Below are positions 2,014 through 21,815 of a stretch of 64,000 nt of DNA, in pieces. The position numbers and the translations under genes are program-made. Under the pieces are notes generated by a model. The model searched no databases. It worked only from the letters and a program-made list of their open reading frames with translations, and was not told where the DNA came from. Location of the stretch: the NCBI GenBank assembly GCA_021613535.1, contig CP075497.1, forward strand, positions 4,526,001 to 4,590,000. The letters are read 5' to 3'. Every line of letters begins with the position of its first letter. Position 1 is the first letter of the stretch. This stretch comes from Adineta vaga (Eukaryota; Animalia; Rotifera).

Positions 2014-2247
2014 GTTTATATTTGTCGTCGAACAGTTTTATAAAAAATGACATAAAACTTTTCTTTATCTCTATGAACTTTTTCTACCGATATTCTCAAA
2101 TTTTCTTTCAAATATAATAATCAGCGTTGATGTAATAGATGTGGATATTTCTTACGTGTTTCAACTTCACGCTCATCCTTAAGCATCACTAATGAATATA
2201 AGCTAATCCTGACATTTTTTCTTTTTTTTACCATTTATAATAAAAAA

Positions 2248-2350
2248 TGTTGCTCTGGCAGATCAATGTTACCATCGATCCGCTTGATTTCGTCATCGCA
2301 ACATGTATTCTATTTTTTTTATATATACCTTTTGGTAAGTTGTAATAAGC
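2248..2350 (-). ncRNA. SL RNA: Spliced-leader RNA gene, type A copy 1 (SL-A1)
   Basis: Minus strand reads AAGTT|GCTTATTACAACTTACCAAAAG|GTATAT. The exon (2350-2329) is 1 mismatch from the bdelloid SL and is followed by a GT donor. About 103 nt with a structured 3' stem; PSE-like box 38 nt upstream. Confidence 0.88.
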
Positions 2351-2460
2351 AACTTTCTCCACGATCAAAGATCCACGCCCTCTAGCGTGTCTCTACACTT
2401 TCTCCTTTTTTCTTTCCTTTCTATACATCAGATATATACAGAATATCATTGAATAAAGTT

Positions 2461-2555
2461 ACTTACTACAACTTATACCAAGAGGTAAATGATCTTACTA
2501 AATCAAATTCATGTTGTGTAGATTGGTGATTAACACTGATCTACCAGAGCAGCAC
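2461..2555 (+). ncRNA. SL RNA: Spliced-leader RNA gene, variant type B copy 1 (SL-B1), possibly promoter-damaged
   Basis: AAGTT|ACTTACTACAACTTATACCAAGAG|GTAAAT, a 24-nt exon at 2461-2484. 3' hairpin GTAGATTGGTG-ATTAA-CACTGATCTAC. The PSE-like remnant is only 17 nt from the start (~22-nt deletion). Confidence 0.75.
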
Positions 2556-2664
2556 TCTTTCATTCAAAACAAAGCAAAGAAAAAACAATCTAATGTAATT
2601 TCGTTTCATTACGAAATAATTCGATGACTATTTTCGTTCGGGTAAAAAAAACTAAAAATGAAAT

Positions 2665-2674
2665 GTGTGCAGAC
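2665..2674 (+). promoter_or_regulatory. PSE-like snRNA promoter element GTGTGCAGAC (U2 copy 1)
   Basis: The same 10-mer lies exactly 38 nt before +1 in all three U2 copies (2665-2674, 3792-3801, rc 5102-5111). Related boxes lie 37-39 nt before five SL genes. Confidence 0.75.
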
Positions 2675-2712
2675 ATGGTGGAGAAAAGAGAAAGGAAATG
2701 TTGCAGTTAGTT

Positions 2713-2904
2713 ATCGCTTCTCGGCCTTTTCGGCTAAGATCAAAGTGTAGTATCTGTTCTCGTCGGTTTGAAAGCCGGCGCTGGTCTCATTGAGGCCAGG
2801 CTCTTTCAAGCAGATTTTTGGACATGGGCCAGGATCACCCGAGTTCACTCGGACCTGTGCCACGGATCGTCTCGACACTGCAGTGCCGTCGAGTTTGGTC
2901 CACT
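2713..2904 (+). ncRNA. U2: U2 spliceosomal snRNA, copy 1
   Basis: 5' ATCGCTTCTCGGCCTTTTCGGCTAAGATCAAAGTGTAGTATCTGTTCT matches U2. Branch-recognition GTAGTA, stems IIa/IIb, Sm site AGATTTTTGG and SL-IV loop ACTGCAGT are all present; 192 nt. Confidence 0.97.
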
Positions 2905-2929
2905 CCCGTTTTCCTTCGGGACAACGGGA
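2904..2929 (+). other. Conserved cUUCGg hairpin immediately 3' of U2 (also 4032-4057 and rc 4847-4872)
   Basis: TCCCGTT-N-TCC-TTCG-GGA-N-AACGGGA in all three copies; only the unpaired N/N position varies. Confidence 0.75.
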
Positions 2930-3319
2930 ATCATTCTAACAAAAACTTATAATGAAAATCAGCTATAGTAATTTCCCTACTTTATTCGATCACAAAGTCA
3001 ATTCAAAGAAAACGTCTCGGAACAAATAATAAAAGAGTGAAAGAATGTTGAACAGATACTTGTTCACTTCTAATATCCATCTTCATAATCGATACATCTT
3101 ATTTTGATAAAGTATCTGTTATTTAATCCTACTATGGTTACATCTCTTCCAAATAAATCCAGTAGATGAAATACTTATACTATTTCACTTCTTATTCTTC
3201 TACATCTTTTTATCAAAGGTATATATAGTAGTGTATGTATAAAATAACTTGTTCAGTTGACTGATTGCTAATGTATGAGGACGACTCTCGTACTATTTTT
3301 CATTTATATTTGATTAAAG

Positions 3320-3425
3320 TGTTGCTCTGGCAGATTGATGATGAACATCAATCCACATTTTATCGTCATCGCAACCTATATTTGTATTCATATGGATATA
3401 TACCTTTTGGTAAATTGTAATAAGC
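3320..3425 (-). ncRNA. SL RNA: Spliced-leader RNA gene, type A copy 2 (SL-A2)
   Basis: Minus strand AAGTT|GCTTATTACAATTTACCAAAAG|GTATAT (exon 3425-3404); 106 nt. PSE-like GTGTAAAGAC 37 nt upstream (rc 3463-3472). Confidence 0.85.
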
Positions 3426-3556
3426 AACTTTCTTCTTTTCCAAGGAGAACGCCCGCTCTTCTGTCTTTACACTTTTCTCTTTTTTCTTTCTTTTACATAC
3501 ATCAGATATCTACGGACTGGAGAAACATCGTTTTCTTCACATCATCGACGAAAGTT

Positions 3557-3665
3557 GTCTATTACAATTTACACCAAGAGGTCAATGATCTTACTAGATC
3601 ACATACATGTTGCGATGACGATAAAATGTGGATTGATGTTCATCATCAATCTACCAGAGCAGCAC
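3557..3665 (+). ncRNA. SL RNA: Spliced-leader RNA gene, variant type B copy 2 (SL-B2)
   Basis: AAGTT|GTCTATTACAATTTACACCAAGAG|GTCAAT, a 24-nt exon at 3557-3580. GATC-TTACTA-GATC hairpin, then a full 3' stem. Confidence 0.8.
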
Positions 3666-3839
3666 TTTAATCAAACTAATATAAATGAAGCAATAGCAAT
3701 CATCACTCGTAGTTTCGTAACAGTGTATTTTTTCATCACGATATTACGAAAATCAATCAGTGACTCATATCGCATCAATTAGAAATGAATGGTGTGCAGA
3801 CGTAGTGCAGAAAAGGGAGAGGAAATTGTGATCGAAGTT

Positions 3840-4032
3840 ATCGCTTCTCGGCCCTCTCAGGCTAAGATCAAAGTGTAGTATCTGTTCTCGTCGGTTTGAA
3901 AGCCGGCGCTGGTCTCATTGAGGCCAGGCTCTTTCAAGCAGATTTTTGGACATGGGCCAGGATCACCCGAGTTCACTCGGACCTGTGCCACGGATCGTCT
4001 CGACACTGCAGTGCCGTCGAGTTTGGTCCACT
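3840..4032 (+). ncRNA. U2: U2 spliceosomal snRNA, copy 2 (stem-loop I loop variant)
   Basis: Identical to copy 1 except the SL-I loop reads CTCTCA instead of TTTTC; flanks are diverged. Confidence 0.96.
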
Positions 4033-4871
4033 CCCGTTCTCCTTCGGGATAACGGGAATCATCTCACCAAAAAAATAATGAAAAAAGAAAATACCTTATA
4101 ACGAACTTCTTTTGTTAAGAAGTACAAATTAGTATCATAATTGCTCTTCGTCCATTGTTTTCTTTTCCATTAAAGCAAAGTTCGTTACCGTTATGATAAA
4201 AATGAAATTCAACTGTTCAAGCCTCTTCTCGAATCATATTTAATGACAAATATGGATCAATGAATGTAGAATGTCATTCTTCACATAAGAATATCTACAT
4301 ATCGACTTACTCAATGAGAGGGTAGAGAGCGGAAGTATCATTTCAGTGTTCTTAGATAAAATATCTCGCGATTTCTTGTTCAAATAAACATCTTGAAAGA
4401 CCAGCTAATTTCAGAAATATACTTGAAAATTCTATTAACCAAAATTCATCAATAAACTTCTAATCATCATTTTGAATCGAAATGTAGGAACTTCGAAGGT
4501 AGATTTATAATGTATCGTAGACGTGCTGTTAAGACATGATTATCTTGACAGATCTAACTTTGATCATTGTAATATAAATATGATTGAATGTTGTTAATAT
4601 ATATGTAGTGCTTTCCAGTCATTTGTGTTTCAATGCTATGTAGATAATGAGTTTTTCTCTCGTACTACTTTCTCTCATGTGTCTATTAAAGGGAGCTTAG
4701 GAAGAGATAAGAGATTTCACAAGCTTCGAACGGAATCATAGCGATGATCTGTTAAAAGAGCACTATTCTGCATCTTCATTTCCTACTGCAACAAAGTAAG
4801 AAAATAAGTATATCTGATTTTCATTATAAGTTTTTGTTAGAATGATTCCCGTTGTCCCGAAGGAGAACGGG

Positions 4872-5063
4872 AGTGGACCAAACTCGACGGCACTGCAGTG
4901 TCGAGACGATCCGTGGCACAGGTCCGAGTGAACTCGGGTGATCCTGGCCCATGTCCAAAAATCTGCTTGAAAGAGCCTGGCCTCAATGAGACCAGCGCCG
5001 GCTTTCAAACCGACGAGAACAGATACTACACTTTGATCTTAGCCGAAAAGGCCGAGAAGCGAT
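4872..5063 (-). ncRNA. U2: U2 spliceosomal snRNA, copy 3
   Basis: Reverse complement of copy 1, with near-identical flanks. Confidence 0.97.
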
Positions 5064-5220
5064 AACTAACTGCAACATTTCCTTTCTCTTTTCTCCACCA
5101 TGTCTGCACACATTTCATTTTTAGTTTTTTTTACCCGAACGAAAATAGTCATCGAATTATTTCGTAATGAAACGAAATTACATTAGATTGTTTTTTCTTT
5201 GCTTTGTTTTGAATGAAAGA

Positions 5221-5315
5221 GTGCTGCTCTGGTAGATCAGTGTTAATCACCAATCTACACAACATGTATTTGATTTAGTAAGATCGTTTACCTCTTCGTA
5301 TAAGTTGTAATAAGT
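5221..5315 (-). ncRNA. SL RNA: Spliced-leader RNA gene, variant type B copy 3 (SL-B3)
   Basis: Minus strand AAGTT|ACTTATTACAACTTATACGAAGAG|GTAAAC (exon 5315-5292). PSE-like ATGTGCAGAC 39 nt upstream (rc 5355-5364). Confidence 0.8.
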
Positions 5316-5644
5316 AACTTTATTCGATGATGTGAAGAGAACGATATTGTTTTAGTCTGCACATATCGGACGTATGTAAACAAAAGAAAAGTGACGTCAC
5401 TAGGATATGATGTCATCGATCGACTGCTTGTTTAATTAATACAATGATCATGAATGACTATTGTGCATTCTCAATGAGAGTAATGATAAGATGTAGAATT
5501 AGAGATGGAGTTTTACGTAGAAAGTGTTGAATGTTAGGAGATCTTGTGTTTGGGGAAAACCTCTGATGTGATAGTTGAACGATTGTAAAGTGTAAAGTGT
5601 AGAGACACGCTAGATGGCGTGGATCGTTGACTATGGAGAAAGTT

Positions 5645-5749
5645 GCTTATTACAACTTACCAAGAGGTATATATAGAAAAAGATAAAATACATGTTGCGA
5701 TGACGAAATCAAGCGGATTGGTGGTAACACTGATCTGCCAGAGCAACAT
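5645..5749 (+). ncRNA. SL RNA: Spliced-leader RNA gene, type A copy 3 (canonical bdelloid SL)
   Basis: GCTTATTACAACTTACCAAGAG (5645-5666) followed by GT equals the published bdelloid leader GGCTTATTACAACTTACCAAGAG (recalled) minus its first G. About 105 nt; PSE-like GTGTAGAGAC at 5597-5606, 38 nt upstream. Confidence 0.93.
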
Positions 5750-11815: not shown

Positions 11816-13628
11816 ATGAGTACTACATATGATACTTCCGATTTTACTTATAAAGCTCGATTAGTTCTCTCCAATCTTGACTCAGTACGACATGATCATA
11901 ATCTTTTACTTTCATCAACTACTGATGAAGATAAACGTCAATGTCTTCAACAATCACTTGAATCAGTTGATTTAGGTATTGATGAAGGTTTGGTTATGTT
12001 ACAACTTGGTCATCATTTCGATGATCTTGATAGTGAAACACATAAATTAATGTTACAAGTGCAAAGGTTAACACAAGAAAATAATTGGCTACGTGATGAA
12101 CTTTCTCTTACAGAAAAACATTTACAAATGAGTACACACTTACGACAAGATTATGAACGAGATATTCATTTATTAAATGAATCATTAGCAACATCACCAT
12201 CGAATACTAATCATCTGAATATATCCAATTCGATTGACATTGAAAAAGAAATGCCTATTGAATCACGAGAACAAATACAAATCAATTCGAATTCGAATCT
12301 TGAATCGAAAAATCAGTCCGATATTCCACCACGTTTTCGTACATTACATAATCTTGTTATTCAATATGCTCAAGCTGGTCGATATGAAGTTGCTGTACCA
12401 TTATGTCGACAAGCACTTGAAGATCTAGAGAAAACTCATGGTCATATACATCCAGATGTTGCGACTATGCTCAATATTCTTGCTTTAGTTTATCGTGATC
12501 AAAATAAATTTAAAGAAGCATTACAATTATTAACTGAAGCCTTAACGATACGTGAACAAACACTTGGATTGGAACATCCAGCAGTTGCTGCCACATTAAA
12601 TAATTTAGCTGTACTCTATGGAAAAAAGAATCGATATAAAGAAGCAGGTAAAATAATGATTTATTTTCCATTGATATACAAAATTTTCACTCAATGTTTT
12701 GCCATTAGAACCATTATGTAAACGTGCATTAGAGATTCGAGAAAAAATCTTCGGTGTTAATCATCCAGATGTAGGTAAACAATTAAATAACTTAGCATTG
12801 TTATGTCTCAATCAAAATAAATATGATAAAGTCGAAGAATATTATAAACGTGCAATTGATATTTATACAAAATCTTACGGAAGAAATGATTCTAATGTAT
12901 TAAAAACTAAAAGTAATCTTGCATCTGCTTATTTACGCGAAGGAAAATATAGATTAGCTGTACAATTATATCAAGAAGTTTTATCTGGATTAAATGAACA
13001 ATGTCAAACTTCATCAATAAATCGTGACATGACATCAATCACTACAACATTAAAAAATCTCGGTATGATTTTAGTCATTTTATCATTGATTTTTTTATAA
13101 AAGTTTCATTTTTTAGGAGCACTTTGTCGTCGACAAGGTCTCAATGAACAAGCTGATTTACTTGATTCATGTACAGCTAAATATTCACAAAATTCTTCGG
13201 AAGCAATCAATAGTGCATTGAATATTCTACGAAAACTTCGATTCAATGATGAAATCAATGGTGAAGTAATACGACGTTCTCAACCAAATGTTCCACAAGA
13301 ATATGGTAAATTACGTCGGAGTGGTTCATTTCAAAAGTTACGTCAAAGTATTCGACGTGGTTCAGAAAAACTTGTCCAAAAACTTCGTGGAACTCCAACT
13401 CATCTTCCATCATTAAATTCTATGCAATTTCAAGAACAAAATAACTCAATCAAACGTGCATCATCAATGTCTGTTTTAAATCATAATTTTCCATCTTATC
13501 CATTACAACAACAACAAACCAATCGAACATTGAATAATCGATGTTCAATTGATCAACAACAACAACATAAACAACAATTCATTCCCCCATCACGAGGTCG
13601 ATTGACAAGTGCAGAAAATCTTCATTAA
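11816..13628 (+). CDS. KLC: Kinesin light chain, 3 exons
   Basis: Heptad [16 protein letters not shown]; TPRs [52 protein letters not shown]; C-terminal [16 protein letters not shown] and KRASS. Confidence 0.95.
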
Positions 13629-21157: not shown

Positions 21158-21815
21158 AAAAATATCTTACTTTGAAGAAAAAGATTTTCTTTCTTACGAA
21201 TTTGTTTAATATTCATTCACAAAATGTAAAAAATGAAAGGAATCGAAATTAGTTTCTGTTTCTCATTCAACTTAACGAACTACGTTTGGTGTACGTTATC
21301 ACTTACTGTCAATCAATTTGGTAATATGAGAGAAGACTCAAACTAGTTTTTTTTTTCTTTTCTACTTCATAACAAGTCGAGTAGACACAACGAATCATAA
21401 ATAATGTAAAGACATGCAACATTTTAATCTTTTTTGATTTCAATATCGAACAATTAATAATGGGAGTAGAGTTTATCGAGTTGGGTGATTTGAACATGTA
21501 TTTCTTTTTATAAATGTGTTAATCTCATGAGAATAGTTACTCAATTTAGAAAGCAAATGTTGTATTAAAAGAAACAAGATCAATATTTTGACACCTTTAA
21601 AGATTGTTTACGAATAATTGCATCTGATAATTTTTAGTTAAATTATTTTCTCTAGTTCTACTAGTCATCAATTAATTTTATGTTTATGCTAGATGTAACC
21701 CGATTGGTCGATAGAATTGCCTACGTTACCACGAGAGAAAAACAAATAAAGAAAAATAATCGTTCACACTTTTTTTTAGTAAAAGACGCTCATTAAAACT
21801 GCCAGAAGAGAAAAA

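Follow-up and report, generated by a model that had tools for sequence, protein, structure and literature searches.

What joins three genes for the small nuclear RNA (snRNA) U2 to apparent palindromes carrying spliced leader (SL) exons at one end of a 64-kb stretch of the Adineta vaga genome? In bdelloid rotifers, half or more of the mRNAs are trans-spliced, and the arms of these palindromes might be SL RNA genes, a dispersed repeat or a product of misassembly. We analysed the whole stretch (the window), C6:4,526,001-4,590,000, which is 64 kb of a 100.8-Mb assembly in six contigs; coordinates without a contig name are window positions. The locus is very probably a real snRNA/SL gene cluster, in which SL gene pairs and U2 were joined and spread by duplication. 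An earlier note made from the window's sequence knew of no description of such an architecture, and we likewise found none of bdelloid SL gene organisation or SL-U2 linkage in the searchable literature, which excluded the original 2005 SL paper.

U2 genes were called with Rfam cmscan (RF00004, gathering score 46 bits), and SL exons were sought with the 23-nt rotifer leader (PMC3795323 Table 1) from base 2 onward followed by GT, the +1 of each SL gene being defined as the base right after AGTT. Each of the three U2 genes lies beside a head-to-head pair of SL genes, in the order SL-A <- -> SL-B -> U2. The SL spacers, measured from +1 to +1, are 110, 131 and 329 bp in units 1, 2 and 3, and the distances from the SL-B 3' end to the U2 +1 are 157, 174 and 157 bp; on re-measurement every spacer and gap given in the earlier note proved correct. 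Its orientations are confirmed by the repeat arms: units 1 and 2 are direct repeats (D1-D8, 78-97%), and unit 3 is inverted with respect to unit 1 (arms 2445-2986 and 4790-5331, 542 nt, 98% complementary).

The SL exon plus GT was matched at 5645-5668(+) without mismatch, at 2327-2350(-) with one and at 3402-3425(-) with two, against a chance expectation of 0.00. These are the SL-A genes. The SL-B exon, 2 nt longer before CCAAGAG, was matched at 2463-2486(+), 3559-3582(+) and 5290-5313(-) (chance expectation 0.01); with its 2-nt insertion and additional substitutions, it does not reproduce the published leader. SL-A copies are 104-107 nt long. Pouchkina-Stantcheva and Tunnacliffe reportedly gave 105-106 nt for the SL RNA in 2005. 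Elsewhere the bdelloid SL RNA is put at ~100 nt (PMC1925144). At gathering thresholds, Rfam gave no SL RNA match within the window and reported U2 alone.

Structure was assessed in two alignments, one of 47 distinct SL genes from this genome (A1) and one of 101 sequences, including 92 distinct copies out of metagenome contigs (A2). The metagenome set came from an exact scan with the leader plus GTA, which returned 99 DNA stretches and yielded 97 contigs with 202 SL hits; dataset names were given for 80 of the 99 stretches, with 31 different prefixes. As these contigs were selected by the presence of an SL gene, they show that a linkage exists elsewhere, not how frequent it is. Their SL genes are at most 93% identical to any SL gene of this genome (median 86%), and therefore come from other taxa. 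In A2, 94.8% of cells are paired in a structure that combines stem-loop II with an outer stem and a long inner one, versus 23-45% when the 3' partners are slid. The structure is supported by 214 compensatory cells, and none of 500 shuffles reached the observed score or paired share. Two pairs of the long 3' stem are G-U in 95 and 69 of the 101 sequences; on the opposite strand they would become C-A, so the structure exists only on the outward-reading strand. The exon and its GT donor are invariant or nearly so across ~250 copies from genome and metagenome, as are the intron motifs GUUGC-R-AUGACGAAA and CUGCCAGAGCAAC in both alignments. Beside the outer stem, GA lies opposite AGA in A1 and A2, which suggests tandem G-A pairs, and no canonical Sm site (a U run) was seen between the SL stems in either alignment. 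The base preceding GCTTATT is T in every one of the ~250 genes. Thus, the first G of the leader is untemplated in these genomes, and the leading G of the published leader would be derived from the cap. The view that the palindromes are divergent SL genes, already taken in the earlier note, is backed by the covariation, by the strand-specific G-U pairs, by the GT donor after the exon and by a promoter element at -48 on each side, to which we return below.

Is this arrangement peculiar to the window? A conserved 3'-domain pattern gave 71 hits in the genome and none in a reversed control; five variant copies bring the number of SL genes to 76. Sixty-six of these form 33 minus-plus pairs, and the +1-to-+1 spacer is 132-135 bp in 26 of the 32 pairs measured. 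In that 32-pair survey, units 1 (111) and 3 (330) of the window are outliers and unit 2 is standard. The divergent promoter spacer of unit 1 (2351-2460) is 110 bp long against the usual 132-135, that of unit 2 (3426-3556) has standard geometry at 131 bp, and that of unit 3 (5316-5644, 329 bp) is ~200 bp above standard. The long spacer of unit 3 recurs in a cassette copy upstream of the window. The ~200 extra bp (5391-5590), also present in that copy, include a perfect TGACGTCA palindrome. The 97 metagenome contigs hold 66 head-to-head pairs with spacers of 125-139 bp (mode 134). The head-to-head pair with a ~133-bp spacer is therefore the standard SL gene unit of bdelloids, mostly without U2. 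Nor is the cassette special to the window: the SL pair is the general SL unit of the genome, and the full cassette occurs 11 times. As a rule, paired genes have not been homogenised, since partners are closer to each other than to any non-partner in just four of 32 pairs, unit 2 among them.

Some 13 solitary SL pairs lie without U2 on C1, C3, C4 and C6, and this is what would be expected if the arms belonged to a dispersed palindromic repeat or mobile element of which the SL exon match is a relic. Homology among them continues for 150 to >500 bp past the genes on both sides, giving a shared segment of ~0.65-1.4 kb. But these flanks have no sharp common ends, and neither target duplications nor sharp shared boundaries were seen at the solitary pairs. 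A repeat would also have to account for a covarying structure with G-U pairs on one strand, for an exon and donor invariant over 250 copies, for a promoter element at a fixed distance, and for a gene length that matches the size of the SL RNA, and this explanation is largely refuted, with next to no chance of being right. Given the homologous flanks, the solitary pairs were copied as DNA segments. The earlier note had named dispersal of the arms without U2 as an outcome that would speak against SL genes. Dispersal there is, but the arms are genes and the linkage to U2 is statistically overwhelming.

The U2 genes of the window are intact and among the main U2 copies of the genome. All three cover positions 1-192 of the 192-position model, with scores of 141, 134.9 and 141 bits. 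Unit 1 has its U2 at 2713-2932(+), with the Rfam-matched part at 2713-2908; the unit 2 gene lies at 3840-4060(+) (Rfam part 3840-4036) and has a longer loop in stem-loop I; and the unit 3 gene lies at 4844-5063(-), its Rfam part (4868-5063) being identical to that of unit 1. The same matched sequence is found in four other copies, one just upstream on C6 and three on C5. In the cmscan alignment, the window genes have the branch-point recognition sequence GUAGUA (GUGUAGUAUCUGUUC) and the Sm site AUUUUUG (AGAUUUUUGGA). Beyond the Rfam end lies an extra 3' hairpin with a CCCGUUU stem, a UUCG loop and AACGGGA (2905-2929, 4033-4057 and 4847-4871(-)). With paired changes, this hairpin is kept in 15 of 15 genomic copies and in the 15 metagenome copies examined. 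A AAATGAAA-like motif 15-25 nt past U2 is a candidate 3' box, suggestive only against the AT-rich background.

Linkage to SL genes holds for the good U2 genes of the whole genome. There are 19 U2 hits, of which 14 sit 137-181 nt from an SL gene; for a fifteenth high-scoring copy (C6:5,166,562), the SL gene, 125 nt downstream, is degenerate, and the remaining four, which lie on C3 and C4, have diverged (49-115 bits). Each of the 15 high-scoring U2 genes in 100.8 Mb thus lies within ~180 bp of an SL gene, where chance would give an estimated ~0.01. None of the 12 genes for U1 (six), U5 (three) and U4 (three) is near an SL gene, Rfam found no family besides U2 in 114 kb of SL clusters, and by Rfam the large canonical SL cluster at C5:9.88-9.93 Mb holds no U2. 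For eleven U2 genes, the immediately preceding gene is of the SL-B type and has the same orientation, which makes 11 SL-A <- -> SL-B -> U2 cassettes, four on C6 (the window's three and another 4 kb upstream) and seven on C5 at 10.912-10.934 Mb. Three further U2 genes, two on C2 and one on C5, follow a second design, SL <- -> U2, with a spacer of ~118-130 bp, near that between paired SL genes. In the metagenome, U2 lies beside SL in 24 of the 97 contigs; 12 of these arrangements are divergent, seven at exactly 133 bp, and 10 are tandem, at 142 or ~300-345 bp. Four metagenome contigs (L053, L060, L062 and L140) carry telomere-like G-rich GGGTGA/GGGTGT repeats ~50 nt downstream of U2. Among the other snRNA genes, two U1 genes lie back to back, minus then plus and 248 bp apart, at C6:4233946-4234518, and in this genome divergent pairing may extend more widely among snRNA genes; genes for U1, U2 and U5 cluster within C6:4.2-5.3 Mb.

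SL and U2 genes also share their upstream architecture. When upstream regions were aligned at +1, a block common to both emerged, the 10-nt element RTGTRNAGAC, which occurs exactly at about -48 in seven of the nine window genes (all three U2, all three SL-A and SL-B of unit 3). Across this genome, exact copies start at -50 to -46 in 37 of 55 distinct SL and six of 10 U2 upstream regions, and at no other position in the 75 nt examined; AGTT directly precedes +1 in most SL and U2 genes alike. Only eight occurrences are found on both strands of the 64 kb, seven of them at cassette genes. The eighth, at 21404, was read as chance, since neither AGTT nor an RNA gene follows it. In unit 1, SL-A has the element at 2389-2398(-) (GTGTAGAGAC at -48) and U2 at 2665-2674(+) (GTGTGCAGAC at -48, with AGTT at -4 to -1). 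The other exact copies serve SL-A (3463-3472(-)) and U2 (3792-3801(+)) in unit 2, and U2 (5102-5111(-)) and SL-A (5597-5606(+)) in unit 3, where SL-B also keeps an intact element at 5355-5364(-) (ATGTGCAGAC at -49). The two exceptions are SL-B genes. That of unit 2 has a weak plus-strand element with two mismatches in the spacer 3426-3556, and that of unit 1 has a promoter-like plus-strand element, also with two mismatches, at -27, because 23 nt are missing between element and +1. In a standard SL pair, two elements face outward ~35 bp apart, one for each gene. The element is thus conserved, lies within the fixed distance of -45 to -55 and is common to different snRNA genes, which places it in the class of the proximal sequence element (PSE).

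These observations suggest how the cluster may be built. Each of its nine genes would be its own snRNA-type transcription unit, presumably of RNA polymerase II, with two SL genes set back to back around a fixed-length spacer of ~133 bp that holds both promoter elements. U2 would have been joined to this unit in two ways, either behind one arm, as in the window, or in place of one arm, as in SL <- -> U2, and the cassette would then have spread by local direct and inverted duplication, and between C5 and C6. The two genes may share the use of their spacer, and which copies are active we infer from their state of preservation. A stronger version would make the 133-bp unit an obligate bidirectional snRNA promoter module into which SL or U2 is slotted, tying U2 to leader supply, with SL-B as a functional second leader; we consider this unlikely. 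Of the proposal that the cassette is a co-duplicated and co-regulated module, the first half is upheld by 11 SL-A/SL-B/U2 copies in two clusters, whereas co-regulation is a conjecture from a common promoter type, each gene having its own element.

The duplication history has left traces beside the RNA genes. At 1466-1987, adjacent to SL-A, lies a truncated open reading frame (ORF). The C5 cluster contains a copy of it in the corresponding position, 73% identical and likewise truncated, from which it follows that a DNA segment carrying the cluster moved between C5 and C6. The ORF encodes 174 aa without a Pfam match and belongs to a large family with >150 genomic matches, most of ~430 aa. The RNA genes are 93-100% alike between the clusters, compared with 73% for the ORF fragment, a difference consistent with selection on the RNA genes or with their gene conversion. 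The two clusters were not accepted as simple partners from a whole-genome duplication, as, for the flanking gene (11816-12718), the closest paralogue is on C3 and not on C5.

Could one or two real units have been inflated to three, or flipped, by repeat resolution in assembly? Units 1 and 3 have 542 nt in common at 98%, no contig spans a unit, and one 120-bp bin is without a contig. Nevertheless, units 1 and 2 differ (78-97%), the three spacers have different lengths and unique sequence lies between the units. Short-read contigs of an independent DNA run covered 29 of 30 bins of the stretch, with allele-like differences at half depth running through the DNA between units, and DNA runs of four studies hold 65-73% of the sampled words of the stretch. 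The C5 cluster, moreover, has the cassette seven times with its own differences. An artefact of this kind is therefore highly improbable.

The SL genes of the cluster are not all in equal condition. All six have perfect long stems with no mismatches, so any damage to them is recent or selective. SL-A of unit 3 (5645-5749(+), 105 nt) is canonical in every respect; none of the other five has the exact canonical exon. SL-A of unit 1 (2247-2350(-)) has a 22-nt exon with one change, the donor GTATAT, an intact 3' domain and a stem-loop II decayed to an A run, and SL-A of unit 2 (3319-3425(-)) has two changes in its exon. In both, the nearly invariant G four bases ahead of the donor is replaced by A (in unit 1, CCAAAAG before GT). 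The 3' domain of SL-A in unit 2 has an unusual loop that is also found in its partner SL-B (arms 3309-3411 and 3573-3675, 83% complementary). SL-B of unit 1 (2461-2555(+)), with a 24-nt exon and an RNA of 95 nt, lacks the 14-nt box CGATGACGAAATCG, as does SL-B of unit 3 (5221-5315(-), 95 nt), in which the box is deleted and the exon has ACG for ACC; this box is invariant or nearly so in 101 other sequences. SL-B of unit 2 (3557-3665(+)) has kept it, and has a 24-nt exon beginning GTC and a weak donor, GTCAAT. SL-B of unit 1 is probably a pseudogene, and the SL-B copies of units 1 and 3 are likely to be non-functional as leader donors. More broadly, lesions at otherwise invariant positions occur in the SL-B arms of the window and partly in its SL-A arms, and at least some of these copies are probably weak or dead.

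A different reading would make both arms active, as a two-leader module with leaders of 22 and 24 nt comparable to nematode SL1 and SL2, whose linkage to U2 couples their dose. Trans-splicing requires U2, and SL-B is a coherent lineage: its exact 24-nt exon has eight genomic copies, all followed by a GTAAA donor, and in all 11 cassettes it forms the U2-adjacent arm. Paired changes set its stem-loop II apart from the canonical one; together with the 5' intron, this stem-loop is nearer the wild-bdelloid consensus than is the canonical type of this genome, and the long stems of SL-B in the window are kept. However, two of the three window SL-B genes are without the near-invariant box, four SL-B copies have 23 nt missing between promoter element and +1, and SL-B copies bear more lesions and stem mismatches genome-wide than canonical SL genes. 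In addition, the U2-proximal SL gene of the metagenome contigs carries the canonical exon, and SL-B has neither an RNA-like contig (see below) nor a retrocopy with the 24-nt leader to its name. As searches for retrocopies with the exact 22-nt leader found none either, they carry no evidence on the use of SL-B. We consider a functional two-leader module unlikely. In the gene-cluster reading, SL-B, the arm next to U2, has diverged into a lineage with a 24-nt exon and is decaying in the window, and SL-A is largely intact.

Expression was approached through public runs, of which those holding the stretch are mostly DNA. Four were compared with the stretch as contigs, three of them presumed to be RNA. 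All three RNA-like runs have contigs on U2 of unit 3 and not on its flanks, at 4834-5064, 4866-5042 and 4866-5020, and an RNA-like U2 contig extends past the Rfam end over the 3' hairpin with the UUCG loop. One RNA-like run has a 164-nt contig on 5641-5748 (SL-A of unit 3) with four differences; since these match the C5 SL-A copies, a gene of the SL-A type is represented. In one of the three, a 192-nt contig covers 5430-5599 in the spacer of unit 3, and its 22 loose letters match the upstream copy.

Several points weigh against reading the locus as a cluster of working genes. The RNA nature of these runs is itself a guess, and their contigs show no ends, strand or levels. Because the 164-nt contig extends beyond the SL gene, by 4 nt upstream and 56 nt downstream, it may be DNA or a read-through precursor. 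No contig of the RNA-like runs lies on SL-B, which says nothing for or against its expression. The damaged SL-B copies, with their perfect long stems, may be young or still in use. No read or contig spans the three units, nor any whole unit, and transcription of SL and U2 genes by RNA polymerase II with SNAPc would be an extrapolation from their architecture.

Two kinds of sequence record further events at SL genes of this genome. Three insertions of ~5.06 kb (C6:1428235-1433294, C5:9902142-9907221(-) and C5:10915977-10921052(+)) interrupt SL genes at one common site, within the part of the intron that forms stem-loop II, with ~11-14 bp of SL sequence duplicated and a poly(A) end. They encode an ORF1 of 428 aa with a zinc knuckle and an ORF2 of 1137 aa with an APE-type endonuclease and a reverse transcriptase, and look like an APE-type non-long-terminal-repeat retrotransposon specific for SL genes. 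The SL-gene elements NeSL, SLACS and CZAR have a restriction-like endonuclease, unlike these insertions, and we found no paper on an APE-type SL-gene retrotransposon in the searchable literature. At C6:4522560-4522900, 3.3 kb ahead of the window, a 22-nt leader (one change) behind an SL-A promoter continues directly, with no GT donor, into non-intron sequence that holds an ORF with a signal-peptide-like start; the arrangement suggests that a trans-spliced mRNA was copied back into an SL gene.

What emerges is a catalogue in which 76 SL genes fall into three types, with an RNA structure backed by covariation and a promoter motif, and a rule of genome organisation: SL genes are arranged in inverted pairs of fixed spacing, and such units carry all the good U2 genes but not those for U1, U4 and U5. 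The SL-pair part of the rule holds in wild relatives, where U2 beside SL also recurs. The observation is more general than the earlier note supposed, and half of the SL genes in the window look impaired. It is a solid result on genome organisation rather than a new mechanism. Whether the fixed spacing is a functional bidirectional promoter, and whether U2 and leader output are coupled, have become testable questions, and for annotation the catalogue helps to locate SL genes and to tell live from decaying copies.

Compared with known systems, the locus is familiar in its parts. As in the bdelloid SL RNA, the leader minus its first G, 22 nt, follows AGTT in SL-A of unit 3 and in 139 of 173 wild copies, with a GT donor and a gene of ~105 nt, whereas SL-A with its GTATAT donor and SL-B with its 24-nt exon are variants beyond the single published leader. 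C. elegans has a 1-kb tandem repeat in which SL1 and 5S genes point away from each other, SL-5S linkage is known from other lineages too, and nematode SL and snRNA genes have a PSE in common. Linkage of SL1 to 5S is also on record for Cbr-SL1 (PMC7986045). The A. vaga cassette resembles the Caenorhabditis arrangement in that its repeated unit links an SL gene with a second gene for a small structural RNA. In contrast, its partner is U2, with the same promoter type, and not 5S, which is transcribed by polymerase III; and it is built on an inverted SL-SL pair with a 133-bp spacer, in mixed clusters and solitary pairs instead of a long tandem array. Finally, like metazoan snRNA genes of the PSE/SNAPc type, the SL and U2 genes have in common a 10-nt element at ~-48, upstream of short, structured, non-polyadenylated RNAs, but the combination of RTGTRNAGAC and AGTT is specific to this lineage, and two of the elements face apart at ~35 bp.

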